This document shows, piece by piece, positions 11,814-49,646 of a DNA stretch of 64,000 nucleotides. Within the stretch, counting starts at the first letter, position 1, and the number at the start of each line of letters is the position of its first letter. The stretch lies in sequence record MT366760.1; one strand, given 5' to 3'. Under the pieces are notes generated by a model. The model saw only the letters and a program-made list of their open reading frames with translations, did no database searches and was not told the DNA's origin. A program made the translations under genes and the position numbers.

Positions 11814-13642
11814 ATGTTACCTTTAAGTCTTTCTATTTCTTTCTTGATACGGTTGGCTTCTATATTAAGTTCAACCTTACGATTCATTTGTACTTCGTTG
11901 GCAATTCGCCTACGAATTATTTCCAATTCAGATGTTAATTCGCGTAGCCTACGTAATTCAGTTGAAACCCCAATATCGTCAGGGTCTTTTAAATGGTCTA
12001 GCAGTGTTCTTGCTGTGGTTTTTTGTACTTGACCGAATTCAGAAGATATCCCAATGAATCGAGCTATATTATGTTCTAGTACTAGAACATTAGCTGAGAC
12101 TGAATTAGGAGGGAACCCATATTTATCTATGAGTAAAGCAGCTTTATTATCCGCGTTAGACCTAGCAGCACTTTCTTTATGATAGATCTCAGTCCAGTGT
12201 CTACCATCATAATTTGGTGCCGCCCATAAAACTACGTAGTAAGGATCTAGCACACGTCTCCCCTCGGTTAACTCTGAAAACTCAGTATCATCAAAATATT
12301 GGTACGGAGTAGCCATCTTACTATTGTTTTCAGCAATTGCATCGAACTTAGGTGACACGGGTTTGTTCTTATCCACTGAGTCAGAGAACTTTTCAAGCAT
12401 ACCAAAAATAGGTGGCTTGATAGGTTTCAATGTGTAGGTCTTTTTGGGTTGTGTTATTTCAGTTCCACCGAGTCCATAAGGGAATGTATAAATACCCACA
12501 AACTTAACCTTGTCATTGTCTACGAATAATGATGCACCCCTATAGGCTAAATTTCTATCCTTAAATGCCATAGCATATTTAAAGGTTGAACCACCCGTGG
12601 GTTCATAAACAACTACAAAATTAGGTTTGGCTATCCTACGACCTGAAGGTTCAATGTAATCTAATTTAACGAATTCTTCAAACTCTTCGGCAGTGTTGGT
12701 CTGTGCAAGTGGAACCTTCAACTTATTTTCCAACTTAGATTGCCACGAATGGAACGTCTTACCGTGCCATCCGTTATCCTCGACGAAGTCAGGTCCGAAT
12801 TGTTCATATTGCCATTGATGCACCATTTCATGCGCTAGAGTACTAATCATAAGCCATGCTGTTTGTAGCTTAATTGAATTTAAACGTATCTTTGTGTCGG
12901 GTGAATTATATACTCCACGAGGCCACGAGAATACACCTAAATTCTTTTTATTTTTAAGTGTTAATATGAACTCAGGTATTTCTTTTAATGTACCTTTGAA
13001 CACCTCTGAATCAATGTAGTAGAAACCTGATCTTACTAGAGCTTGTGACAACACTATTTTCTGAGATTTGTCTCGGAAGAATTCTATGATAGGCTGATCT
13101 GTGATAGTAAGTGATTCATAAGCAACGGCTCTTGAAGTCATTTTCCAGTCACGAACACGCAAAACGTTAGAGTCCCTTTCAAGTAACCCATTATACTTAA
13201 CGTTTACTTCAGTGTATGCGTCAGTTTCTATAACTAAGGAAGAACCCTTGGCGTAAACTACAACACCGTAAGTATATTTGTCGGAGCCCTTATTTTTAAA
13301 AGCAACACGCTCACCTGCGGTTATATCCCTAGTCTTATTAGATGACTTATCATTCTTAGAAGTAGAGAGCCATTTGTCTAAGTTTCTTGGTTTTATCTCT
13401 GATTTACGTTTTTTAGATTTAAGCGCGTGTCCGAGTATCCCGACTTTAGAGGATGTAGCTTTATATTGCCACTTCTCACCGTCATCAAACAAAACGTAAA
13501 CTAGATTATTAGCACGTGATATCTTAGTAACAGAAGCAACGTAGTACTCAGGTTCCTTTGTAGTATTGATGTTTACAACTACACGGTCACCCTTAGAGTA
13601 ATTATCAATAAGGGCACTAACTATGATGTGTTTAAATGACAA
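11810..13642 (-). CDS. two Tudor/SH3-like domains fused to a SprT-like metalloprotease
   Basis: LAHEMVHQWQ..HGKTF SprT motif; N-terminal domain paralogous to 6340..8148. Start moved to the TTG at 13642 (AAGGAG upstream), which removes the overlap with 13701..15050 and gives MSFKHIIVSA. Confidence 0.75.
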   Translation of the reverse strand: MSFKHIIVSALIDNYSKGDRVVVNINTTKEPEYYVASVTKISRANNLVYVLFDDGEKWQYKATSSKVGILGHALKSKKRKSEIKPRNLDKWLSTSKNDKSSNKTRDITAGERVAFKNKGSDKYTYGVVVYAKGSSLVIETDAYTEVNVKYNGLLERDSNVLRVRDWKMTSRAVAYESLTITDQPIIEFFRDKSQKIVLSQALVRSGFYYIDSEVFKGTLKEIPEFILTLKNKKNLGVFSWPRGVYNSPDTKIRLNSIKLQTAWLMISTLAHEMVHQWQYEQFGPDFVEDNGWHGKTFHSWQSKLENKLKVPLAQTNTAEEFEEFVKLDYIEPSGRRIAKPNFVVVYEPTGGSTFKYAMAFKDRNLAYRGASLFVDNDKVKFVGIYTFPYGLGGTEITQPKKTYTLKPIKPPIFGMLEKFSDSVDKNKPVSPKFDAIAENNSKMATPYQYFDDTEFSELTEGRRVLDPYYVVLWAAPNYDGRHWTEIYHKESAARSNADNKAALLIDKYGFPPNSVSANVLVLEHNIARFIGISSEFGQVQKTTARTLLDHLKDPDDIGVSTELRRLRELTSELEIIRRRIANEVQMNRKVELNIEANRIKKEIERLKGNI

Positions 13643-13700
13643 ATTTAGCACTCCTTTGAAGTTAGGAAGAGGGGTGATGGTGTACCACCCCTCGTGTTCA

Positions 13701-15050
13701 CTACTGGCGAACCTTCTTACGAAGCTCCACACGGTCTTTAACAGCACATAATTTACCATAGGCGTCTTGCATTTCTGCATAATCCTCGGTAGTCATGTAT
13801 TCATAACCGGATTCAAGCATCTTAGTAGCGTCCATGATTCGACCCATTAGGGGAACAGAATCATCCTGCATTGCAGTAACAACGCTCGCCATTTGCTCTT
13901 GAACGGATGCCCATTCAGACATAGGACGTTGTTGTTGGTAGCGCATACCATCTGGCATACCCATCCCTGCTGCGCGTGGTGAATTGAATTGACCAACACC
14001 CATTGGGATTTGTAGACCTTTAGTGAAGGACTCGTTGATATCGAATTCGTCGTCACCGTCAGCTTGTTCACCACCTGAAGCGTGATTAAGAATAGAGTTC
14101 TTAAGCGTTGCTTCGAATAGTTGTGCAGCTTGTTGCATCTGTTCCAACGACATAGGATAGCTACTCTGGCGCATTGCTTCCATTAGGTATCCAGTGATAT
14201 CATAGGTCATCTTGTTATCTGAATCTAGGGCTGCTAATGTGTCACCACCACCAGTGTAGTAGCCTTCCGGATTAGCCGCAGGGTAACCGAAGAAGTACGC
14301 ACATGATGGGCAGTAGCCAGTCGAAGGCCAAATTTGTTTCAATTGACAGCGTGGGCATGTCATGTTCAGAGCAACTGAAGACTCTTCTTTTTCCATACCG
14401 TCGTTGGTTTGTGTTGAACCATCATTATCAACTTCTTTGTCTTCTAGTTCTTTGACTTTTTCGTCAACGACCTGCGGAGCATCTTCTTCACCTTCGCCAC
14501 CCATATGCATTGTTTGGTCAGGGCGGTTAGATGGGAAGAAAGGACTGTCATTGTGCTTACCAAAAGGTGTACCGTAGTACTGACATGATGCATCAAGATA
14601 CATGTGCACGTCTTCCTGTTTAACACCATCAGTAGATACATCACCATTCCAACGACCAATGATACCTATACCGCTGTTTGTTGGGGCGAATGTTTCTGTT
14701 TCACCGTTGATGCTAACTGATACCTTCTTACCAACGCGAGTAATTTCACCCGCGTGGAATTGTGGGTTACCCCAAGATGGTCCTTTGTTGACAAGTACTT
14801 TTTCGCCTTTGTTGTAGCGAATGTTACCTGCTTCTTCTTTAACCATCCCGTCTTGACCAGGTTCCTTTTTAGTATTCCATGAGGAATCTAACTCATTATA
14901 GAACTCAATCTTTTGTGATGGTGTTAGTTGATTAGGAGAAGTAACGTTGTACTTCTTCAACATGTTTTCGAAAAGCTCTTGATATGAAGAAGCTACCACG
15001 TTCATGCGACTAGCGACGTTAGCAGCTACCTGTTTAACTCCGTTTCTCAT
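13701..15050 (-). CDS. hypothetical probable head-associated protein (SH3-like domain, CxxC Zn ribbon, acidic linker)
   Basis: YNKGEKVLV..AGEITRVG barrel; CPRC/CPSC; N-terminal VKQVAA/NVVAS motif. Confidence 0.6.
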   Translation of the reverse strand: MRNGVKQVAANVASRMNVVASSYQELFENMLKKYNVTSPNQLTPSQKIEFYNELDSSWNTKKEPGQDGMVKEEAGNIRYNKGEKVLVNKGPSWGNPQFHAGEITRVGKKVSVSINGETETFAPTNSGIGIIGRWNGDVSTDGVKQEDVHMYLDASCQYYGTPFGKHNDSPFFPSNRPDQTMHMGGEGEEDAPQVVDEKVKELEDKEVDNDGSTQTNDGMEKEESSVALNMTCPRCQLKQIWPSTGYCPSCAYFFGYPAANPEGYYTGGGDTLAALDSDNKMTYDITGYLMEAMRQSSYPMSLEQMQQAAQLFEATLKNSILNHASGGEQADGDDEFDINESFTKGLQIPMGVGQFNSPRAAGMGMPDGMRYQQQRPMSEWASVQEQMASVVTAMQDDSVPLMGRIMDATKMLESGYEYMTTEDYAEMQDAYGKLCAVKDRVELRKKVRQ

Positions 15051-33038: not shown

Positions 33039-34187
33039 TTACTCCGCATCTAATAAGAAGGTATGGTCACATTGTTTACCTTCGAAGTTAGTAGCAACTA
33101 GACGTTCATTACCGTTCTCGTCAGTTATTACTTTAGCGTAATCAGGTTGGATAGGCATCTTACCTAAACCACCAATACCATCCAAAATGAATGTAGGCAT
33201 TGCAGGACCTGATATCCAACCGCGCAACTTGTGAATGATTTCAAGAGTGCGATGATAGTTAACTTGAATGTGACTATTACCTGGAGCAGGATCCATAGTG
33301 TATACGTAATAGGGTCTTACACCATGTGACATAAGTTCCATGAATAGTTCTTTCAAGATTACGGGGTCGTCGTTGACACCTTTCCATAGTACGCTTTGGT
33401 TACCAACAGGAATACCGCCACGGGTCAACATTCGAATATGTTTGATGAATAGTGGTGTAATCTCCTTCGGGTGATTTACCTGAATATTAACTAGAGTCAC
33501 ATCGTGCTTGTGCAGGATATCTACTAGCTCTTGGTCAATACGAGTAGGAAGATGTACGGGTAGTCGTGTGCCGATGCGTAGGATCTTTAAGTCTGGACGC
33601 GCTTCACGAATCATACCAAGTATCTTATCCAATTTAGCATTCGGGAACATTAAAGGGTCACCACCGGATAGTAGTACGTCTTCAATGTTCTTGTTTTCAC
33701 GTAACCATTCAACACCGTTACGAATCTGAGTCATATCAATATGAGCATCAGGGTCTAGAACAATACGCTTTCTTGTACAATGACGGCAGAGTGCAGCACA
33801 TATTGTGTTCATAAGGAACAGTACGCGCTGAGGATAACGGTGTGTGATAGAAGTCCCTGGGATTTCCATGTGATGCTCACCTAACTGGTCACCTTCTTCG
33901 TGTGGTGCGATGTGTCGTTCTGCTTCAGTCGGTAGGAACTGTAAGCGGATTGGACAATTAGGGTCATTTTCATCCATCAGTTGAGCAAGGTATGGCGTAA
34001 TTGCCACTTCAGACTCTTGGTAGAATGAATCATCAACACGAGGAACATTATTCATCACTAGCTCTGCGTGTCCGTTTGTTTTAAGTCGGCGGTTATAGAC
34101 CTTTGTCCATGGAGTGTTCTCCACGTCGTAATTCATAAGCTCTTCACGTGTAGCGAAAGGAGCCCCTGTCATTGCAAGTAGTGACAT
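33039..34187 (-). CDS. kamA: lysine 2,3-aminomutase (radical SAM/PLP, KamA/AblA/EpmB family)
   Basis: HRYPQRVL, CAALCRHCTRKR, LLSGGDPL, RIGTR, NQSVLWKGVND, PYYVYTMD, PTFILDGIGGLGK (PLP Lys). Confidence 0.9.
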   Translation of the reverse strand: MSLLAMTGAPFATREELMNYDVENTPWTKVYNRRLKTNGHAELVMNNVPRVDDSFYQESEVAITPYLAQLMDENDPNCPIRLQFLPTEAERHIAPHEEGDQLGEHHMEIPGTSITHRYPQRVLFLMNTICAALCRHCTRKRIVLDPDAHIDMTQIRNGVEWLRENKNIEDVLLSGGDPLMFPNAKLDKILGMIREARPDLKILRIGTRLPVHLPTRIDQELVDILHKHDVTLVNIQVNHPKEITPLFIKHIRMLTRGGIPVGNQSVLWKGVNDDPVILKELFMELMSHGVRPYYVYTMDPAPGNSHIQVNYHRTLEIIHKLRGWISGPAMPTFILDGIGGLGKMPIQPDYAKVITDENGNERLVATNFEGKQCDHTFLLDAE

Positions 34188-34240: not shown

Positions 34241-36334
34241 TTACAATAATAGTAGTTTAGGTGCAAACTCGTGATTGTGGTCGAATAGCATACCAATATG
34301 AGGTTCTTCACGGAACGCACCGTACAACACGTTCTGTTGACGTGCTACGTGGATGGCTAGAACGTAAGCATCTTGTGGTGAAGTGTCTGAGTAACCTTGA
34401 CCGATACCGTAACGGGTGTTCGAATCTGCGATTGCGTAGTCAGCACCACAGAATGAAGCAGCATCAATCAAGTCGAAACCACAATCGTCTTCGGAGAAGT
34501 AGTTGAATAGTGATCTTGTTACACAGTAGTCTGCTTCACCACCACCGCAAAGCGGTACGGTATAGATAGACACACCACATGAGAAGCGAGCACGCCATTC
34601 AGGGTCGATGTGTTTCTTAGCTTCTAAGTGTTCGAGTACTACGGGTAATGGACGACCCATCTGACGGGTTAGTGTTGAGTTGTTTGAACAACCCATTCTG
34701 ACCATCCATTCAGTGAAGTAAGGAACGTCATCAACTACCATAAAGCTTGCGTCAATCCAACCGAACAGACCATCTACTTCTTTGTGAAGTGAACGCATCT
34801 TCTCGGCTAGTTCTTCTACGATTGGATAGTTTTGAATCTTGGTATCGTGCAGCGTTGTAGTATCGCCACCTTTACCACCCGTGTCATTGTGCATCAGCTT
34901 ATTAACTTCCCACAAGATACACATTGGTTGTACGTGGTCTTCGTTAATCAGGAAGCTAACGTTGAATTCGTTGTCTCCGCGACCTAGATATTGTTCGATG
35001 AATAGCGCACCACCATTCAAGAGGTTTGGTAATGTTAATTCGAAACCATCTTTATCGAAAATATCAATGAAGTGAGTCTTCAGATATTTAACTGCGATCT
35101 TATCCGTTGGGATACGGTCTTTTTTCGCGTGCCAATCTTCTAGGGACTTGACGACGATTGATGCGGGTACGTTAAAACCAATTGCTTCTGCACATTTGTG
35201 ACCGAATACACGGTTACGTTCCAACGCACGGGCGTCCTGAGTATGGAAGTGAGTCAGGTAGTCGAGTAACGGTGGTACAATTTCTTCGTTGTAGCCCAAC
35301 GTTGAGAAGTATTGACCGCGTTCGTAATCACCTACACGTTCCATCAGCTCGATGAATTCAGGGTCATCAAAGTCTACACAGTTAGGTAGTTCTGATGGTT
35401 CGATGTCGGGGAACAACTCACGTAGTTGGTGCATGTTAACTTGAGGAATGGTAACTAGTTGTACGTCAGCAATACCTTCTGAGGTATTACAATTGTAACG
35501 TGTTGCACTAGTACCACCTGAACCTTCTTCTATTCGAAGGTGGACAATTTTATCGCAGTTGATACCGTCTTCTACCAATAGGCGAGCCTGAGCGATGTAA
35601 TCGTATTGCTTGCGTAGTCGAAGTTTCGGCATGTTCTGGGGTTCACTACGTTCATTAACTTCTGCGTTACCAAGAGGCATCATGAAGTCAACGTATTCAC
35701 GGGAATCTAGACCTTGCCAAATATCAACCCATTCCTGAGTGTCATAAATAGGTCGGGATAGCTTGTAACCCGCAAGTACGAAGTTACTTTGATCTTCGTC
35801 ACTTAAATTAGCAAAGAACAACGTAAACATCCCATCATCTTTTTCAACATGTGCCACATGTGAGATATGTGATGTGAGCATCGGTACAAGTTTGGTCTGC
35901 GCAAATGGAATTGAAGGATACGTTGCTTCATCACGTAGCCCTTGGAGTGTGATAAAGTCAGCAGGTTCCATTGGTCGTAGGTTGTAGAGTGGTGAACCAC
36001 TAGACCAACCAGATATCATTTGCTGCGACTCGTAAATAATAGGGTCACCTGAGTGAACGGTGTAGGGTGCCAGACGTTGTTGGTAGATAGTCGGAAAGTC
36101 TGGGATTGTTGATACCCCACCGAATTGTGCAAAGTGGACTACGCAATCTGATAGCCCATTGTTGTAGATCAAAGTTGTAGGGAACTGAGCTAGGTAGTCC
36201 GATAGCAGTGGGATAAAATAATCACCTCTGACGTAACGACCAGGACTGCTCAAGTAATTCGCTGTTGTCACACGTTTGCCTGTGAAGTCTAATTTCTTCA
36301 CCATGTCAAATAGTGGGTTTAATAATGATTTCAT
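34241..36334 (-). CDS. PurD-like ATP-grasp amide ligase with ~330 aa unknown N-terminal region
   Basis: LERNRVFGH, IAVK, FIEQYLG, EVNKLMHNDTGGKGG, FTEWMVRMG parallel the PurD ATP-grasp motifs. Start moved to 36334 (GAGG RBS). Confidence 0.7.
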   Translation of the reverse strand: MKSLLNPLFDMVKKLDFTGKRVTTANYLSSPGRYVRGDYFIPLLSDYLAQFPTTLIYNNGLSDCVVHFAQFGGVSTIPDFPTIYQQRLAPYTVHSGDPIIYESQQMISGWSSGSPLYNLRPMEPADFITLQGLRDEATYPSIPFAQTKLVPMLTSHISHVAHVEKDDGMFTLFFANLSDEDQSNFVLAGYKLSRPIYDTQEWVDIWQGLDSREYVDFMMPLGNAEVNERSEPQNMPKLRLRKQYDYIAQARLLVEDGINCDKIVHLRIEEGSGGTSATRYNCNTSEGIADVQLVTIPQVNMHQLRELFPDIEPSELPNCVDFDDPEFIELMERVGDYERGQYFSTLGYNEEIVPPLLDYLTHFHTQDARALERNRVFGHKCAEAIGFNVPASIVVKSLEDWHAKKDRIPTDKIAVKYLKTHFIDIFDKDGFELTLPNLLNGGALFIEQYLGRGDNEFNVSFLINEDHVQPMCILWEVNKLMHNDTGGKGGDTTTLHDTKIQNYPIVEELAEKMRSLHKEVDGLFGWIDASFMVVDDVPYFTEWMVRMGCSNNSTLTRQMGRPLPVVLEHLEAKKHIDPEWRARFSCGVSIYTVPLCGGGEADYCVTRSLFNYFSEDDCGFDLIDAASFCGADYAIADSNTRYGIGQGYSDTSPQDAYVLAIHVARQQNVLYGAFREEPHIGMLFDHNHEFAPKLLLL

Positions 36335-36336
36335 AA

Positions 36337-37479
36337 TTATGCCTCGTCGCCTAATACTACGACACTTTCTGGAAGTTCCCAACCGTTTTTCTCTGAGTAG
36401 AGCGGTGGTGTTAAGTAACCTGGGTTTTCACGACACACACAGATTGTCGTGTTCGTGTTATTGTCATTTACAATAAGGCGCTTGTATGTCTCGATACTTT
36501 CACCACCTGACACATTGGTACGGCAAGTTGGGTCAAGATAAAGCACTGGATGTTTTGAGTCTTCAATGTAGTACTTGACCATACTACCTAGCATTAGTGC
36601 GCCTACATTGTGGTGTGACTTATCACGAACATTAGCTTGGAAGAACGCGGTTACTTCTTTGTTTTCCGGATTGAAACGATTGACGAAGGAACCAATGGAA
36701 ATGATTTCATTAGTTTCTTTGTCAGTTACCACACAGAACTGAGTAGTACCCTTAGGCATATTGACGACACATGCCCACGCCCACATGGATTGGAGTAGAG
36801 CGTATTCGAATTCTAAGTAATCGGGGTACGACTTACGTAGTAGTTCGATGGTGCGTTCTTGAAGCGTACGTATATCTAGGAAACCACCACCATTGTATGA
36901 ATGAAGGTTACCGTGGAAGTATTCATCAAAGATATCTACGTGGTATCGGTCTTGGTTAAGTGCTTGACGAACTTTGTAACGGCGCTTCTTAGTCAAGGAT
37001 GCTAGGTACTCGTCGAATGTCTCGTGGTTTAAATTAGCCACGGGACTATTCAACCAAAGTAAGTTCTCTGATTTGTATTCGTGTGCATCAGATAACGTCA
37101 CTGTCTCTGTTGATAGCATGTTGTAGCCGTGAGAACCAAGTACTTCGAGTAGTGCTTTGCATGATTCTTCACAAACCAAGTCAGCTTGTGTGTAAGGTAA
37201 ATATGGATGACATAACACGTGTGATAGTGGTAGTTCCCATTCGGAGTCTTTACGTTCAGTACTGTGGACGAATGGACTAGGATTAAAACCCAAACCCGCT
37301 AAACGTCCCTCAGTAATCATAGTAATAGGAGTGTTAAGGGTAGCACCACAATTGAATTGACGTAGGTACGTGTCAAATGTGGAAATAACTTCACTGTTAA
37401 GTTCTGGAGTAAGTGTTGAGGAATAACCATGAAGTTTACACCAGTTGTATAGGTATTCTGTTATTGATACTGTTTTCAT
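36337..37479 (-). CDS. FemAB-like / Acetyltransf_6 GNAT-fold acyl- or aminoacyl-transferase
   Basis: TFDEYLASLTKKRRYKVRQAL signature; VGALMLGSMVKY. Confidence 0.65.
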   Translation of the reverse strand: MKTVSITEYLYNWCKLHGYSSTLTPELNSEVISTFDTYLRQFNCGATLNTPITMITEGRLAGLGFNPSPFVHSTERKDSEWELPLSHVLCHPYLPYTQADLVCEESCKALLEVLGSHGYNMLSTETVTLSDAHEYKSENLLWLNSPVANLNHETFDEYLASLTKKRRYKVRQALNQDRYHVDIFDEYFHGNLHSYNGGGFLDIRTLQERTIELLRKSYPDYLEFEYALLQSMWAWACVVNMPKGTTQFCVVTDKETNEIISIGSFVNRFNPENKEVTAFFQANVRDKSHHNVGALMLGSMVKYYIEDSKHPVLYLDPTCRTNVSGGESIETYKRLIVNDNNTNTTICVCRENPGYLTPPLYSEKNGWELPESVVVLGDEA

Positions 37480-37487
37480 TTTTAGTC

Positions 37488-38510
37488 CTATAGTGAAGTA
37501 CGGTCTTTGTTGTAACCGTGGTCACAAGCTTCAGGGATTAAGTCAAGTAGTTGTTGTGGGATGTCATTGTTGAATTGAATACCCTTATGGTATTTCTCCT
37601 CTTCACACCACATGCGCTTCCAATCATAGTAACCTACACCAAAGTTGTAGTATTTACAACCAAGTGCCTTAGCCAATAAGTATCCGTGGTAGAGTAGTAC
37701 GTTACCAATGTTGTTACCGACAGTACGGCGCGAGAAGTCCCAGTATAATTCTTCACCATTATCAGTTACGGAAAATACGGCGAGACCTGAACAGTCGCCT
37801 AGGTCAATTTCAGCAGTTATCCAACGGTCGAAATTGAATCCAGTGAAGAAGTTTAGGAAAAGTAATTGATCTTCGGATACTGTGTGATGTTTACCCGTAC
37901 TTTCCCAATACTTAAGGAAGTCTTCTTTGTAGCGTTCACAATCTGCGGCAATTTCATCAGTGTGATGTGGATGAGATACTTCTACACCTGCATTACGTAA
38001 TGTCGTAACGTCTACGGCATTGTACGCCTTGTTGATAATTGGTAATTGTGGGGTTTCAACAAGCTTCTTGAATGGGCGGTAGAAGCGTTTTAGGTTTTTC
38101 TCTTCAACGTTCATACGTAATGTCATCAGACCATGGTCGTGAGTAGACATTCCGAATTCTTCTAGGTTGAAACCTTTTGTCCAAAAGTTAACGTAGTCGT
38201 CAGCGGAGGACGATTCCCCCATGATGATTGTAATGAATTTAGTCTTGTCGTGCTCTATTTCATCACGAACAATCTGAATAGGCATTACGTTGTTATGGGA
38301 ATCACGCAGGAACACGGGTTCCGTACATCGGTAGTATTTAGAACCTTCGATTTCTTCGGCAGTTAGATAATAAAGACCACTATAACTAGGAATCTTCATA
38401 CCGCCTAAAGAATCAGTGCCGAGTTTATTAGTGTACCATTGTTGATCTACAACGTGACCGAAAGGTTCTTCAGCAATGTCACCATGTTTATTCATTACTT
38501 TAACTAACAT
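37488..38510 (-). CDS. second FemAB-like / Acetyltransf_6 GNAT-fold transferase
   Basis: IGNVLLYHGYLLAKALGCKYYNFGVGYYDWKRMW C-terminal signature. Confidence 0.6.
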   Translation of the reverse strand: MLVKVMNKHGDIAEEPFGHVVDQQWYTNKLGTDSLGGMKIPSYSGLYYLTAEEIEGSKYYRCTEPVFLRDSHNNVMPIQIVRDEIEHDKTKFITIIMGESSSADDYVNFWTKGFNLEEFGMSTHDHGLMTLRMNVEEKNLKRFYRPFKKLVETPQLPIINKAYNAVDVTTLRNAGVEVSHPHHTDEIAADCERYKEDFLKYWESTGKHHTVSEDQLLFLNFFTGFNFDRWITAEIDLGDCSGLAVFSVTDNGEELYWDFSRRTVGNNIGNVLLYHGYLLAKALGCKYYNFGVGYYDWKRMWCEEEKYHKGIQFNNDIPQQLLDLIPEACDHGYNKDRTSL

Positions 38511-39204
38511 TGTCTAACGCTCCCTGACTGTCCGTGCATTGTGAACAAATACCACAAGGTGGGTAGAACTCACAACTAATACGGTTTGAATAATCTTCAC
38601 CAAATGTACGACCTAGTGCAACTACTTGTTCTTTTGACATGTGCATTAGGGGTGTATCAATGACGAATGGTTTAGAGAACGATTGGAATAACAGTTCGTT
38701 CATCGTCTTAACGAAGTGAGGATTAATATCTGCACCGCGAGTTGCACCATTGGTACGAGTACCTACATCTAACTCAGGGTCATTTAGCTGAATACCAAAC
38801 GTCAGTTTATTACAACCTGCGTAGATTGCTTCGATTGATGCTTGTAGGAGGAATGCAGCATTACGACCTTCCAACCAAAACCAGTCAGGATGCTCAGCTA
38901 GTGAGTCACAATCTTCAGTTAGAGAATCACGGGAGAAACCTTGCTTTGGTTTGTACCCTTCATGGAAGACACCGAAGTCTGAGATATCGTGTCCGTTGCG
39001 TACCATGATTTCAGGATACGCAACTTCTAAGACGCGAGTAGAACAACCCCAGAAGTGTGCATAGTACTCCATGATGCGTTGTTGTTCTTCAAATACAGCT
39101 TGTCCATAGTTAACGAGGATAAGCATTTTAAGTTTGCCAGTGGCATTGATTAGGTGACCCGCGACGATGCTGTCAATCCCACCTGAGAATAATAGTGCGT
39201 TCAT
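38500..39204 (-). CDS. divergent QueC-like PP-loop ATP pyrophosphatase
   Basis: LLFSGGIDS, NYGQ, EGRNAAFL, TPLMHMSKEQVV, C-x5-CGICSQC; lacks the YPDC motif. Confidence 0.8.
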   Translation of the reverse strand: MNALLFSGGIDSIVAGHLINATGKLKMLILVNYGQAVFEEQQRIMEYYAHFWGCSTRVLEVAYPEIMVRNGHDISDFGVFHEGYKPKQGFSRDSLTEDCDSLAEHPDWFWLEGRNAAFLLQASIEAIYAGCNKLTFGIQLNDPELDVGTRTNGATRGADINPHFVKTMNELLFQSFSKPFVIDTPLMHMSKEQVVALGRTFGEDYSNRISCEFYPPCGICSQCTDSQGALDNVS

Positions 39205-39244: not shown

Positions 39245-39273
39245 AAAAATGGGCAGCAAGAGCCACCCATTTT
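39245..39273 (-). terminator. intrinsic terminator after queC
   Basis: AAAATGGGTGGC-TCTT-GCTGCCCATTTTT on the minus strand. Confidence 0.65.
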
Positions 39274-39283
39274 AAATTAGCGT

Positions 39284-40090
39284 TTAGCAGTCTTCTGGAC
39301 TAACGAATTCACTGTCAGACCCACCTTCAACTACCCACTGGTAGCGAGCACGTGCAGGGTCATCAATACCCGCTTCATCAAAACCACGCTTACGTAACAA
39401 GCAGCTATGACAAGAGCCACAACCTAGAACAACGTTACCGTTTTCACCACGAGTGAAATCTTTGCCGTTGTAACAGGTATGGGTAAAGCTGATAGCTTCC
39501 ATACATTCATCACCTAGCTCTTGTGCAAGTTCGACAGTAGCCTTCTTAGACAAGTGCATTAGTGGGGTTGTGATTTTAATCAAGTGATCTTCACCGAAGT
39601 CTTCTTCAAGGAACAATGCTGCATTAGTAGCTGCCTGTAACTTGTCGATGAAAACTTGGCGGCAATCTGGGTAACCACCGAAATCTTCTTCACAAACACC
39701 GGTAACAATGTGACGCAGACGATGTACGTAAGCACGGTTGCTAGCAATCGTAAGGAATACTAAGTTACGTGATGGAACAAATGTATTTTCCAAACCACCA
39801 GGGAGTGAGTCAGCATCTGCATATTGCTCAACCTTTTCGTTGCGGTTAGTCAGTGGGCTTGTACCCTGTAGGATATCGTGACCCAAAGCGATGATCTCAA
39901 ACGGAACTTGCGCACGGTCTGCAATTTTACGAGCCAATATTGTTTCAGTGATATGGCGTTGACCATAGTTGAAACAGATAGCACGAACGTTCTCACGACC
40001 ATATTCACGAATTGCCCAATGTAGACAAGTCGTTGAGTCTTGTCCGCCTGATAGTACAACGACTGCACCTTCTTTCATTTCATTGCTCAT
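39284..40090 (-). CDS. queC: 7-cyano-7-deazaguanine (preQ0) synthase
   Basis: VVVLSGGQDSTTCL, FNYGQRH, TFVPSRN, GGYPDCR, PLMHLSK, THTCYNG, GCGSCHSCLLRKRGF. Confidence 0.95.
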   Translation of the reverse strand: MSNEMKEGAVVVLSGGQDSTTCLHWAIREYGRENVRAICFNYGQRHITETILARKIADRAQVPFEIIALGHDILQGTSPLTNRNEKVEQYADADSLPGGLENTFVPSRNLVFLTIASNRAYVHRLRHIVTGVCEEDFGGYPDCRQVFIDKLQAATNAALFLEEDFGEDHLIKITTPLMHLSKKATVELAQELGDECMEAISFTHTCYNGKDFTRGENGNVVLGCGSCHSCLLRKRGFDEAGIDDPARARYQWVVEGGSDSEFVSPEDC

Positions 40091-40101
40091 TTTGTATTCC
40101 C

Positions 40102-41109
40102 TTACTGTTCGATGTGGCTTAGGTCGTCTTCTTCGTCTTCTTCATCTTCTTCGCGGATTTCAAGTAACGCGTTACGGAGTGAACAGATTAGAGACGTGCT
40201 GCTTAGATTTAGGTAGTCTGAATAGAACTTAACTTCATTCACGAACTTAACCTGTGGAATGATACCGCCTGCCCATAGGTTGTTATGTGTTAGTTCGTCA
40301 AACGCTGCTTTAATCGCTAGGTTATAGAAGTCACAGTAAACAACAATAGTATCATGTTCATGTTTAGAGAAGTAATCAACAAAGGTCTTTTTCAGACGCC
40401 ATTCGTACGGGATACCCGAATCATAGTGTGGCATAATAGCCCAAAGATCTTGAGGTACGATACCCAGTACGCCAGTCGCATTCGCAATGTAAGTATCTGA
40501 AGAACAACCAGTTGCTTCAAGGCAGTCAATAACTGCTGAGTGCATTGGTGCAGGGTACGGTTTGTCGGGTGCGCATGGAACAAGAACCAAATTACGTTTG
40601 GTTGGTGTATAATCGTCAAGAGTTTCGAAGTAATCCAAAACTTCTTTACGATGGAATGAACCATTGTTAGTAATGATGAACTCTTTACGCTCATGTTGTA
40701 GGTTCTTAGTGAGTTGTGGAAGTTTGGTCTCCCACTGCATATCACTTTTCCATAGTGCGTCCACCAACTCTGGGCGGAATCCACACACAACTTCGATAGA
40801 GGTACGGTCTAGGAATGGATAACGGCAGAACTGAGTTGACTTGTCTACGTTAAGTAAACGAGAAACTTGTTCGTCGTGCTCAAAGTGAACTTGAGGTGTA
40901 CTACAATCCGCACCTAAATAGTTAAGTAGTGGAACCCAAGAAGCGGGTGGTCGAGTAACCGTCCACGGCTCCGAAGACTCTGCTACCACTTTGAAGATAT
41001 CTAGGTATGAACCATAGCGATCTTCGTATCGACCACCCGATGGCATTTGGGATAAGTCGATGTGACGGTCTTCTTTATCAATGACCGTTTCTGAGGAGTT
41101 TACTGTCAT
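40102..41109 (-). CDS. archaeosine synthase ArcS/TgtA2 core (DUF5591)-like protein
   Basis: RKEVLDYF..YTPTKRNLVLVPCAPDKPY..H and GVLGIVPQDL..PHYD match the recalled ArcS core motifs PCSxxKPY and LGLVPREL..HYD. Confidence 0.7.
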   Translation of the reverse strand: MTVNSSETVIDKEDRHIDLSQMPSGGRYEDRYGSYLDIFKVVAESSEPWTVTRPPASWVPLLNYLGADCSTPQVHFEHDEQVSRLLNVDKSTQFCRYPFLDRTSIEVVCGFRPELVDALWKSDMQWETKLPQLTKNLQHERKEFIITNNGSFHRKEVLDYFETLDDYTPTKRNLVLVPCAPDKPYPAPMHSAVIDCLEATGCSSDTYIANATGVLGIVPQDLWAIMPHYDSGIPYEWRLKKTFVDYFSKHEHDTIVVYCDFYNLAIKAAFDELTHNNLWAGGIIPQVKFVNEVKFYSDYLNLSSTSLICSLRNALLEIREEDEEDEEDDLSHIEQ

Positions 41110-41160: not shown

Positions 41161-42483
41161 TTAGTTTACAGAATAATGTGAGTATGTTTCTTCCCACGCT
41201 AAAAATTTATTTATTCCCCTTAGAAATAGTATTACGGTGATGTCACCGATACCTTTCTTATTCATAAGCCTATTATACATCTGACCACGTGTAAGGGAAG
41301 CGGGTTCATCACCTAGGTCTTTGAATATCTGAGTGAGTTTAGCGGGTGGGATGGTAGCTCCCTCTTGTGTGACGAAAGCACCAGACACAAGTGCACGCTG
41401 TGTTAATGTCAGCCTTCTAACTGAGTTTTGGAGTGCGTTGTAGAGTATACGAATTGTCGTAGTACCAAAGCCGTTTAGCTTAGCTAAGTCTTCTTCGGTG
41501 GCATCCATTAAAGCAAAGATGTCACTATATTTACGTGATATTTCACTAACCTTGGCATCAGAAATGTTACGTATCGAAAGCACGGAGGATAGTGCGTAAT
41601 TTAAATGGGCTTTTTTCCTACCGTCACAGTCTAAGTTATAGCAGAACAGTCGATGGTCATCTTCAAATATGTCACCACGGCACGACGGACACTTCTTAAG
41701 ATTCTCGGTTGCGTGTGGTGAGTGATATACCTTTTCTATTGACGGTGGTAAGTTCTTAGGTTTGTTAACGTTCAGCATGATTGCTGTACCAACACCAACA
41801 CCAAGGTCATGAAGCACCTTGCATGATTGCAGTGGTATGTTGCTGTAGGACGTATGATTAGTCGTCAGCTTTTCTATTTCCAAGGTTGGTCGGATTTCAC
41901 CAGTACGCTGAACCTTATAACGAATGTGGGTTACGACAGTTACTAGATGTGTCTTATCTTTCTTCTTCCAGTACCAATAGAAATTACCATTAGCGACGAC
42001 CACACCCTTGCGTGCTTTGACGTTCACCAATACATCTTTTAGTTTTGAACTGGAAACGGAACAACGCAGGGGTGATAAATGGTCAGCGGGGATGAAGCCA
42101 TCCTTAACTGCTGAAAGTTCATTACTATGCAGGAATATGAAGTCAGTATCTCCAGATTTCAAACCGCGCATAACCTCTTTAGGTTTAGAAGCACTTATCG
42201 GGTTCACTATCTGAGTAGTTAGGATTCCCAACACTTGTCCTTTTGGATGCGCAATGCGGTTGGGGATAAGACCGTTATCAACTATTCTATGGAAGTCTAT
42301 GGCTTTGAGTCTATTGTATTTCTTGTGGTCGTAAGCTATCCAAGCACCAATAGGTGTGTGTGCTTCATACACCACTTTAATAGGTACACCGCTCAACCCA
42401 GGATATACATGATAATGAACCACCTTAGACTTTTCTAATTCGCGTTGGTGGTTCTTATTGAATTTCTTAATTTGAGAGTTCAT
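41161..42483 (-). CDS. catalytically degenerate NAD-ligase paralogue (OB fold, C4 Zn finger, HhH)
   Basis: VQRTGEIRP, CPSC..FCYN.DC, HhH GFGTTT; KxDG region reads PGLSGVP. Start moved to 42483 (GGAGG RBS). Confidence 0.7.
   Translation of the reverse strand: MNSQIKKFNKNHQRELEKSKVVHYHVYPGLSGVPIKVVYEAHTPIGAWIAYDHKKYNRLKAIDFHRIVDNGLIPNRIAHPKGQVLGILTTQIVNPISASKPKEVMRGLKSGDTDFIFLHSNELSAVKDGFIPADHLSPLRCSVSSSKLKDVLVNVKARKGVVVANGNFYWYWKKKDKTHLVTVVTHIRYKVQRTGEIRPTLEIEKLTTNHTSYSNIPLQSCKVLHDLGVGVGTAIMLNVNKPKNLPPSIEKVYHSPHATENLKKCPSCRGDIFEDDHRLFCYNLDCDGRKKAHLNYALSSVLSIRNISDAKVSEISRKYSDIFALMDATEEDLAKLNGFGTTTIRILYNALQNSVRRLTLTQRALVSGAFVTQEGATIPPAKLTQIFKDLGDEPASLTRGQMYNRLMNKKGIGDITVILFLRGINKFLAWEETYSHYSVN
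41165..41171 (-). promoter_or_regulatory. CTGTAAA motif
   Basis: In the last codons of 41161..42483, 56 nt before the ArcS-like ATG. Confidence 0.45.
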
Positions 42484-49561: not shown

Positions 49562-49646
49562 GGTGTGGTAGTTCAACTGGATAGAACAGCAGGGTGCACC
49601 GTTAACAGACTGCCAGTTATTGGTTCAAAGCCAATCCACACCACCA
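49562..49646 (+). tRNA. tRNA-like gene (85 nt) with an 8-nt-expanded anticodon loop; identity uncertain
   Basis: Acceptor GGTGTGG/CCACACC + A + CCA; D arm GTTC/GAAC; T arm ATTGG-TTCAAAG-CCAAT; anticodon stem GCAG/CTGC. Confidence 0.8.

Follow-up and report, generated by a model that had tools for sequence, protein, structure and literature searches.

The ArcS-like gene and its surroundings

The gene GR7B_00119 of Vibrio phage vB_VcorM_GR7B (hereafter GR7B) lies at 40102..41109 on the minus strand of a 64,000-nucleotide (nt) stretch of sequence record MT366760.1, which we call the window. GR7B is a 207,758-bp myovirus whose host is Vibrio coralliilyticus; the window is 100% identical to its genome, and a window position equals the record position minus 62000. 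The open reading frame (ORF) matches the annotated locus at 100% identity, encodes 335 aa from an ATG start with an AGGAA-type ribosome-binding site upstream, and is recorded as a 'hypothetical protein'. The sister phage GR11A (MT366761.1) carries an orthologue with 72% protein identity in unchanged gene order. An earlier note, made from the sequence alone, had read the gene as a stand-alone ArcS core domain adjacent to queC that carries out an amidine-forming step. Modification of DNA with 7-deazaguanines, of which eight derivatives are known, shields phage genomes against restriction and some CRISPR nucleases, and the role of the phage ArcS homologue is its least settled step. The gene, its parts and its immediate downstream neighbour are as follows.

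40102..41109, minus strand: ArcS-like gene GR7B_00119 (putative ArcS2-type, long form), 335 aa; from the ORF, Pfam DUF5591, NCBIfam ArcS, homologues, AlphaFold2 (AF2), BFVD and hhalign
40807..41109, minus strand: family-specific N-terminal region, residues 1-101; from an alignment of 52 homologues and model confidence (predicted local distance difference test, pLDDT)
40333..40806, minus strand: ArcS-homologous core, residues 102-259 (Pfam DUF5591 part 160-259); from NF040592, PF17884 and a profile match to PDB 2q07
40540..40578, minus strand: catalytic-core motif PC-x3-KPY-..-H, residues 178-190; from the 52-member alignment and the 2q07 alignment
40420..40476, minus strand: second conserved motif TGVxG-VP-..-W-..-P-YD, residues 212-230; from the 52-member alignment, 2q07 and the ArcS2 of phage nt-1
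40123..40152, minus strand: acidic run, residues 320-329, in the C-terminal helix; in 1/52 family members
39284..40090, minus strand: QueC, GR7B_00118, 11 nt downstream of the ArcS-like gene; Pfam QueC 204 bits and TIGR00364 185 bits, above cut-off

Homology to the ArcS core

Two family searches identified an ArcS-type core in the protein. Pfam DUF5591 (PF17884) matched residues 160-259 (model positions 4-109 of 150) at E=2e-6 and 28.2 bits, over the cut-off of 26, and the NCBIfam model of archaeosine synthase subunit alpha, NF040592, matched residues 102-256 (model positions 226-386 of 575) at E=9.4e-12. The NF040592 score of 44.3 bits falls far under the equivalog cut-off of 440 because only the core is present; GR7B_00119 does not have the full ArcS architecture. 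As the earlier note had observed, the Pfam and NCBIfam searches found neither a tRNA-guanine transglycosylase (TGT) domain nor a PUA domain in GR7B_00119. PHROGs has no family for it.

The signature motif published for the C1 core of ArcS is PC-X3-KPY-X2-S-X2-H (PMC10516641). The corresponding region of GR7B_00119 is PCAPDKPYPAPMH (residues 178-190), and the motif stretch quoted in the earlier note, LGIVPQDLWAIMPHYD, is indeed present at residues 215-230. Residue conservation was counted in an alignment of 52 family members. P178, C179, D182, K183, P184, Y185 and P186 of the signature were invariant (52/52) and H190 was kept in 51/52, while the position of the signature Ser, 187, held Ser in 29/52 members and Ala in 23/52, GR7B being among those with Ala. 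In the second motif, T212, G213, V214, G216, P219, W223, P227, Y229 and D230 were likewise invariant in all 52.

A profile of the family matched one solved structure, 2q07 (AF0587 of A. fulgidus, a split DUF5591-PUA protein), at E=1.8e-5, and this alignment pairs PC-x3-KPY, the motif Ser and His, and the VP..P..YD stretch with the GR7B family. AF0587 differs from the family in having a PUA domain and in lacking the phage-type N-terminal domain. Single-sequence phmmer searches of the PDB with GR7B_00119, and with three neighbouring proteins of 340, 380 and 697 aa described below, returned nothing useful. AF2, run on the family alignment, gave a confident single-body model (pLDDT 91.5; predicted template modelling score, pTM, 0.86). 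The structural match to ArcS that the earlier note had expected was borne out in one database and by the 2q07 profile match, and failed in another: Foldseek with the full model found no PDB entry at E<=1e-3, with 2q07 outside the top 50 and merely generic flavodoxin/Rossmann-like matches, none significant, whereas in BFVD the second match, after the GR11A orthologue, was a DUF5591 protein of phage nt-1 (E=1.4e-4, probability 1.0; 193 columns, 17% identity, template modelling score 0.51 on the target).

Truncated ArcS homologues in deazaguanine-modifying phages, which the earlier note had mentioned, are indeed published; these core-only proteins were named ArcS2 by Cui, Hutinet et al., NAR 2023 (PMC10516641). 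The nt-1 ArcS2 (VPFG_00169, L043:14416-15096) is likewise the stand-alone DUF5591 core of a large Vibrio phage. The Foldseek match to it is accompanied by profile-level homology: when the family alignment was compared with nt-1 ArcS2 by hhalign, 105 columns aligned at E=2.4e-6 and a probability of 88.9%, pairing GR7B residues 162-281 with nt-1 residues 46-164. BLAST of the GR7B core against 50,697 phage genomes, however, did not reach nt-1 ArcS2 even at E<=5. At 226 aa against 335, the nt-1 protein lacks the ~115-residue N-terminal extension, with just 45 residues preceding the point aligned to GR7B residue 162, and its signature motif has degenerated, with Leu in place of Pro and Arg in place of Lys, where members of the GR7B family have the canonical PC-x3-KPY. 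Because of the 2q07 profile, BFVD and hhalign matches on the one hand, and the BLAST miss and motif differences on the other, GR7B_00119 is on these comparisons a true ArcS-core homologue that belongs to a different subfamily from the tested nt-1 ArcS2. The stand-alone ArcS/DUF5591 core in the window is confirmed, well beyond chance.

A long-form subfamily

A word-indexed protein search with GR7B_00119 returned 154 clusters at E<=1e-3. Among the 120 matches listed, identity was 43-54%, length 275-335 aa and query coverage ~90%, and nearly all carried PF17884. The N-terminal ~100-140 residues matched no Pfam, NCBIfam or PHROG family, in agreement with the earlier reading of an N-terminus without a known family; we add that this stretch is conserved across >150 homologues and that residues 1-101 were modelled with pLDDT >90 over most of their length. 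Invariant N-terminal residues in the 52-member alignment include Y28, E29, Y32, P55, W58, F76, R102, E106, R112, P113 and E114. The acidic tail pointed out earlier is present as the run EEDEEDEEDD (residues 320-329); it occurs in GR7B alone among the 52 members, is missing even from the 72%-identical GR11A protein, and is a lineage-specific appendage.

Cultured matches among 50,697 phage records were limited to GR7B, GR11A and five ~227-kb Xanthomonas/Erwinia phages (26% identity), and the long contigs that carry a long-form ArcS-like gene resemble large phages. Two strict family patterns found no member in 185,579 species-representative bacterial and archaeal genomes, a strictness that leaves absence there unproven. 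GR7B_00119 thus represents a subfamily with its own conserved, confidently folded N-terminal extension, found only on viral or metagenomic contigs. Stand-alone phage ArcS cores are already published as ArcS2; the long-form subfamily, with GR7B and GR11A as cultured members, is new.

Pairing with QueC and the route to preQ0

We compared the neighbourhoods of 28 ArcS-like loci, which form 21 clusters at 90% identity with GR7B excluded, by scanning six-frame ORFs in flanks of <=10 kb with hidden Markov models of the GR7B cluster proteins. A QueC-type gene lay near the ArcS-like gene in 21/21 distinct loci, often a few bases off or overlapping, so the adjacency to queC claimed in the earlier note, 11 nt in GR7B, extends to every locus compared. 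By contrast, the nt-1 ArcS2 gene stands between QueD-like and FolE genes. On one phage-like contig (L009; GCA_009772235.1, contig WNFQ01000021.1), an adenylosuccinate-synthase-like gene was seen at 12842-14053 near the DUF5591-QueC pair; it may be of the PurZ kind (2-aminoadenine DNA).

The other genes for 7-cyano-7-deazaguanine (preQ0) in GR7B are FolE (GR7B_00072), a QueD-like gene (GR7B_00040) and a QueE-like radical S-adenosylmethionine (SAM) gene (GR7B_00075), alongside QueC (GR7B_00118). GR7B_00174 encodes a 538-aa TGT/DpdA-like protein with a weak match to archaeal TgtA; of these five genes only QueC lies in the window. Because FolE, QueD-like, QueE-like and TGT-like genes and QueC are all present, the predicted route to preQ0 in DNA is complete. 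Just upstream of the TGT/DpdA-like gene, at record positions 152570-156587 (outside the window; L011:37570-41587), lie an acyl carrier protein gene and two unknown genes, one of which, GR7B_00172, has homologues beside the TGT-like gene of Pseudomonas phage Aura and near deazaguanine genes in metagenomic phages. Phage nt-1, like GR7B, encodes FolE, QueD, QueE, QueC and a DpdA-type transglycosylase. GR7B_00119 shows the marks of a phage ArcS2: a stand-alone DUF5591 core, preQ0 genes with a DpdA-type gene, and homology, though remote, to nt-1 ArcS2.

Archaeal ArcS provides the model for the proposed reaction. The enzyme of T. kodakarensis adds L-lysine to the nitrile of preQ0 that is part of tRNA or RNA fragments or is supplied as the nucleoside or 5'-nucleotide, though not as the free base, so the earlier statement that ArcS uses lysine is supported; it joins lysine by the side-chain amine, and the radical-SAM partner RaSEA then frees archaeosine, G+ (PMC11298593). 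Archaeal ArcS and GR7B_00119 share a homologous catalytic core and, apart from the shorter spacer and the Ala at the Ser position in GR7B, the signature motif. Canonical ArcS, however, has ~575 aa with a TGT-like N-domain, C2 and PUA and acts on tRNA, whereas GR7B_00119 lacks these domains and its likely substrate would be DNA or a deoxynucleotide. Gat-QueC of phage 9g, an alternative synthase of the DNA form of archaeosine (dG+), performs the same step in phage DNA modification, from preQ0 to the amidine. This glutamine amidotransferase-QueC fusion is non-homologous to DUF5591 and joins an amine-delivering module to a QueC-type module, recalling the invariable ArcS-like/QueC adjacency.

Amidine formation, the role given to the gene in the earlier note, is its most likely role, because a stand-alone ArcS core stands by queC, phage ArcS2 proteins are published, the whole pathway is encoded and archaeal ArcS uses lysine. 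The function of phage ArcS was left open in earlier work, and Hutinet et al. raised an amidohydrolase role (PMC6884629), in which the DUF5591 homologue would hydrate or hydrolyse the nitrile and turn preQ0 into 7-amido- or 7-carboxy-7-deazaguanine (ADG or CDG). [quoted passage not shown] The Ala that replaces the motif Ser in GR7B and 23/52 members also counts in favour of hydrolysis, and against it stands the strict retention of PC-x3-KPY and the His, which brings the family nearer to canonical ArcS than the nt-1 version. The sole phage ArcS2 tested gave dG+: nt-1 ArcS2 expressed with nt-1 DpdA2 produced it in E. coli plasmid DNA (PMC10516641). We regard nitrile hydrolysis as highly improbable.

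The yields in that experiment bear on what ArcS2 makes. With DpdA2 alone, the deoxy form of preQ0 (dPreQ0) reached 926-1607 per million nucleotides and fell to 0-11 with ArcS2, at which dG+ was only 4-7; nt-1 virions contain mostly dPreQ0 (PMC10516641). Since >99% of dPreQ0 was lost yet dG+ reached only 4-7 per million nucleotides, our own reading of the published table is that most preQ0 in the co-expression probably ends in an unmeasured form.

A probable second unit downstream, from a QueC paralog to KamA

Downstream of QueC, on the same strand, lies a run of genes that ends in a KamA-family aminomutase.

39246..39273, minus strand: terminator-like hairpin with a T-run between QueC and the QueC paralog; 12-bp stem, kept in GR11A
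38500..39204, minus strand: QueC paralog ('QueC2') GR7B_00117, 234 aa; weak QueC match, 63 bits
37488..38510, minus strand: unknown 340-aa protein GR7B_00116; the sole homologue found is in GR11A
36337..37479, minus strand: FemX-like aminoacyl-transferase candidate GR7B_00115, 380 aa; from AF2 and Foldseek
34241..36334, minus strand: PurD-like ATP-grasp ligase (predicted) GR7B_00114, 697 aa if counted from the annotated start, extended at the N-terminus; from a family profile against the PDB
33039..34187, minus strand: KamA-family radical SAM aminomutase GR7B_00113, ~6 kb downstream of the ArcS-like gene; from TIGR00238 and PDB 2a5h

In GR7B_00117 the PP-loop SGGxDS is intact, as are four Zn cysteines, and compared with QueC the sequence contains an insertion. 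The gap of 79 nt between QueC and its paralog, which holds the hairpin, is 89% identical between GR7B and GR11A. PHROGs had no family for the 340-, 380- and 697-aa proteins, and GR7B_00116 had no match in Pfam, PHROGs, NCBIfam or the PDB. A guess by eye that GR7B_00116 is a second GNAT/FemAB-like protein was rejected, as hhalign against the 380-aa family gave 0.1% and the PDB profile search was empty.

The GR7B_00115 family comprises 8 clusters. Its AF2 model has a pLDDT of 58.8, with core residues 146-320 at 70-90, and Foldseek against the PDB matched FemX (E=1.8e-5), the aminoacyl-tRNA-dependent peptide synthases Sba18/Sbb17 and lysyl-phosphatidylglycerol synthase, at probability 1.0. Pfam matches to FemAB_like and Acetyltransf_6 were weak and confined to single members of the family. 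For GR7B_00114, a word-indexed search with the 697-aa protein found the GR11A orthologue only, and an exhaustive HMMER search of 1.8 billion proteins found 31 representative clusters, some members of which match Pfam GARS_A and ATP-grasp. The family profile matched glycinamide ribonucleotide (GAR) synthetases in the PDB (5vev, E=1e-20; 2yw2, E=6e-19). PurD ligates an amino-acid carboxylate to an amine. Because of the match to PurD structures at E=1e-20, the C-terminal two-thirds of GR7B_00114 is, by profile homology, an ATP-grasp ligase of this carboxylate-to-amine kind.

GR7B_00113 scored 231.8 bits with TIGR00238 (cut-off 199.2) and 316.7 with the lysine 2,3-aminomutase equivalog, below its cut-off of 525. 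It matched PDB 2a5h at E=1e-73, with the CxxxCxxC cluster conserved. It also keeps the residues aligned to those of the Clostridium lysine 2,3-aminomutase (2a5h) that we take to be the lysine-binding Asp pair and the Lys that binds pyridoxal phosphate.

Near the ArcS-like gene, the genes of this run were found in the same 21 loci as follows.

QueC paralog of the GR7B_00117 type: 6/21 (GR11A, L020, L023, L031, L032, L033)
KamA: 2/21 (GR11A, L020)
ATP-grasp ligase: 2/21 (GR11A, L020)
FemX-like gene: 2/21 (GR11A; Xanthomonas phage PhiXhv-12, directly after a DUF5591-like gene)

KamA is ~6 kb from the ArcS-like gene in GR7B, so like arrangements would be visible within flanks of <=10 kb. One of the QueC-paralog loci belongs to a small phage, where structural genes come immediately after QueC, the ArcS-like gene and the paralog. 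The nt-1 locus, unlike that of GR7B, has no KamA, ATP-grasp or FemX-like neighbours in its annotation.

The set at 34241-39204 on the minus strand (QueC paralog, FemX-like, PurD-like ATP-grasp, often with KamA) recurs beside 7-deazaguanine genes in L010, L020, L038, L040, L044 and L046. On two more contigs, QueC, QueC, ATP-grasp and FemX-like genes occur, and both KamA and an ArcS-like gene are missing. In PhiXhv-12 (L041, PV764601.1, 118196-124144), a FemX-like gene comes directly after a distant DUF5591-like gene. Within a few genes are a PIG-L-type deacetylase, a glycosyltransferase, an L/F-transferase and a protein of 507 aa whose annotation is GlmS-like. This last protein may be of the Gat-QueC type, because the QueC of GR7B also matches the PHROG family of that GlmS-like name, and the locus is possibly another hypermodification cluster.

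The partner of KamA

Five lineages have a KamA closely related to that of GR7B: GR7B/GR11A, nine Aura-type Pseudomonas putida phages, and the metagenomic phage contigs L020 (=L045), L044 and L046. In 5/5 a member of the ATP-grasp family stands just upstream of KamA and deazaguanine genes are close by; between the ATP-grasp gene and KamA, GR7B, GR11A and Aura have a FemX-like gene or other short ones. An ArcS-like gene is nearby in 2/5 of the lineages and lacking nearby in 3/5. A scan of the whole 199.5-kb Aura genome found no ORF matching the ArcS-like profile (best E-value 0.23), and Aura has homologues of the TGT-like protein (52% identity), FolE, the QueE-like and QueD-like proteins, two QueC-like proteins, ATP-grasp, FemX-like and KamA.

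The earlier note had suggested that with KamA nearby the donor of the ArcS-like enzyme could be beta-lysine, which would give a beta-lysine amidine of preQ0. beta-Lysine keeps the side-chain amine of lysine, and the KamA of GR7B, with a lysine-type pocket, lies ~6 kb off on the same strand. The side-chain amine is the group by which archaeal ArcS attaches lysine (PMC11298593), and the ArcS-like gene and KamA also occur together in GR11A and in the unrelated metagenomic phage L020. This proposal did not hold up well in the wider comparison. The ArcS-like/QueC pair has no KamA within the flank in 19/21 distinct loci, whereas the PurD-like ATP-grasp is KamA's constant neighbour in 5/5 lineages. 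In 3/5 of these there is no ArcS-like gene nearby, Aura having none genome-wide, so the KamA/ATP-grasp/FemX-like set of the Aura-like phages is kept without one, and in GR7B the conserved terminator-like hairpin parts the ArcS-like and QueC genes from the KamA unit. beta-Lysine as ArcS donor is less likely, being less economical than assignment to the ATP-grasp ligase, and we consider it quite improbable.

The KamA product, most likely beta-lysine, therefore appears best assigned to the ATP-grasp ligase and not to the ArcS-like enzyme, as far as gene neighbourhoods indicate. Because KamA is near the ArcS-like gene in 2/21 loci and the ATP-grasp gene is upstream of KamA in 5/5 lineages, GR7B appears from its gene order to carry two units, one of the ArcS-like gene and QueC, the other of the QueC paralog, the 340-aa protein and the FemX-like, ATP-grasp and KamA genes. 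The first would be a widespread module and fits the nitrile-to-amidine step by homology. The second fits a rarer amide-bond-forming set beside deazaguanine genes (QueC paralog, FemX-like, ATP-grasp and optionally KamA). A literature search for aminomutase or ATP-grasp genes tied to phage deazaguanine, and for GR7B itself, found nothing relevant.

A proposed pathway and the relation of the two units

From the observed homology, motifs, fold, neighbourhoods and distribution we infer a substrate, a donor, an order of steps and a final product. QueC would make preQ0, and the TGT/DpdA-like enzyme would insert it into DNA. The ArcS-like enzyme would then add an amine across the preQ0 nitrile to form an amidine, either the archaeosine base (dG+) or an N-substituted amidine such as a lysine adduct, as in archaeal ArcS. 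Either this amidine or, in a lysine adduct, the unbound end of the amino acid would be the probable handle for decoration by the downstream unit, in which the ATP-grasp ligase, rather than the ArcS-like enzyme, would use up what KamA makes, most likely beta-lysine. A lysine-type adduct would have amino and carboxyl groups free to be ligated further. Overall, GR7B_00119 is probably a phage ArcS2-type enzyme that is paired with QueC and converts the nitrile to the amidine, with the downstream unit decorating the product and its ATP-grasp ligase consuming what KamA makes.

Several points weigh against this pathway. The motif of the GR7B family is one residue shorter than the canonical one, with a deletion before the Ser relative to 2q07; in GR7B that Ser is replaced by Ala; and the fold search of the PDB gave no significant match. 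Transfer of function from nt-1 ArcS2 is weak because of its 17% identity and its invisibility to BLAST, and for the ArcS homologues of phages and viruses the published products were not the expected ones, STSV-2 having dCDG and nt-1 virions mostly dPreQ0. In Aura-like phages the downstream unit operates although there is no ArcS-like gene; it therefore does not depend on an ArcS-made handle, and the units may be independent. The co-occurrence counts are constrained by the flank limit of <=10 kb. The literature gave us neither biochemical nor DNA-composition data on GR7B or on other members of the subfamily.

The independence of the units leads to a different end product, in which the ArcS-like enzyme and QueC make plain dG+ and the downstream unit is a separate branch that forms, for example, an amide from CDG by means of the QueC paralog. 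That nt-1 ArcS2 gives dG+ agrees with this (PMC10516641), as do the many family members, the majority, that are accompanied only by QueC and preQ0 genes, the Aura-like phages that have the downstream unit without an ArcS-like gene, the hairpin that parts the units, and the PP-loop and Zn site retained in the paralog. The units are nevertheless contiguous and in the same order in GR7B, GR11A and L020; a QueC2-type paralog adjoins the ArcS-like gene in 6/21 loci, even in the small phage without the rest of the unit; and in PhiXhv-12 the FemX-like gene directly follows the DUF5591-like gene, so that in a second lineage, too, ArcS-like products would be connected with aminoacyl transfer. Nor is any RaSEA-like radical SAM gene annotated that would free G+ from a lysine adduct. 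We therefore think the separate-branch arrangement unlikely.

No RaSEA candidate is visible in the GR7B annotation, since beside the QueE-like gene the only annotated radical-SAM genes are NrdG and KamA, a negative that covers the annotated genes. KamA as a stand-in for RaSEA was considered and rejected: an aminomutase shifts the alpha-amine and leaves the side-chain C-N bond, and KamA occurs without an ArcS-like gene in three lineages. Given the contiguity of the units in GR7B, GR11A and L020, the FemX-like gene of PhiXhv-12 and the lack of an annotated RaSEA-type enzyme, we favour a second unit that would build on the ArcS product in GR7B, rather than run beside it.

Decoration of the ArcS product could go further, and in GR7B, GR11A and their relatives modification might not end at archaeosine. 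In the apparent absence of a RaSEA-type enzyme, the ArcS-like enzyme might leave a lysine-type amino acid on the C7 amidine, and the FemX-like, ATP-grasp and KamA proteins might extend it, with beta-lysine among the additions, to a peptide-like polycationic 7-deazaguanine. We put this forward tentatively, as a possible outcome. The published nt-1 values, with >99% of dPreQ0 lost and 4-7 dG+, would fit a major unseen product of ArcS2.

Other features of the window

Upstream of the ArcS-like gene, and elsewhere in the window, two further features were noted.

41161..42483, minus strand: LigA-like protein GR7B_00120, the upstream neighbour; from Pfam and NCBIfam, OB and HhH parts only
49562-49646, plus strand: tRNA-like gene called by ARAGORN, with an abnormal two-base anticodon

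GR7B_00120 (440 aa), which the record names 'LigA', covers only positions ~307-489 of the NAD-ligase model, and no adenylation domain was recognised in it by Pfam or NCBIfam. A separate full-length ligase, GR7B_00085, is present in GR7B. In GR11A and Aura the cluster is headed by a homologue of GR7B_00120, and the protein may serve the modification genes as a DNA-binding accessory. For the tRNA-like gene, Rfam gave no tRNA at the gathering score; the gene is homologous to an annotated tRNA-Cys of GR11A, in the same place after RNase HI and with compensatory stem changes.

Implications

GR7B_00119 defines a large ArcS2 subfamily with two cultured members, GR7B and GR11A. If the adenylosuccinate-synthase-like gene of L009 is of the PurZ kind, two base replacements could coexist in one genome. 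The set of QueC paralog, FemX-like, ATP-grasp and aminomutase genes recurs by deazaguanine genes in several unrelated large phages, and we found no mention of it in the literature. The more interesting lead is that this second unit suggests a 7-deazaguanine decorated with amino acids, of a kind not described before. Amino-acid-decorated deazaguanines, if true, would widen the known chemistry of natural DNA, and a peptide-like polycationic 7-deazaguanine, if true, would be a class not yet described.

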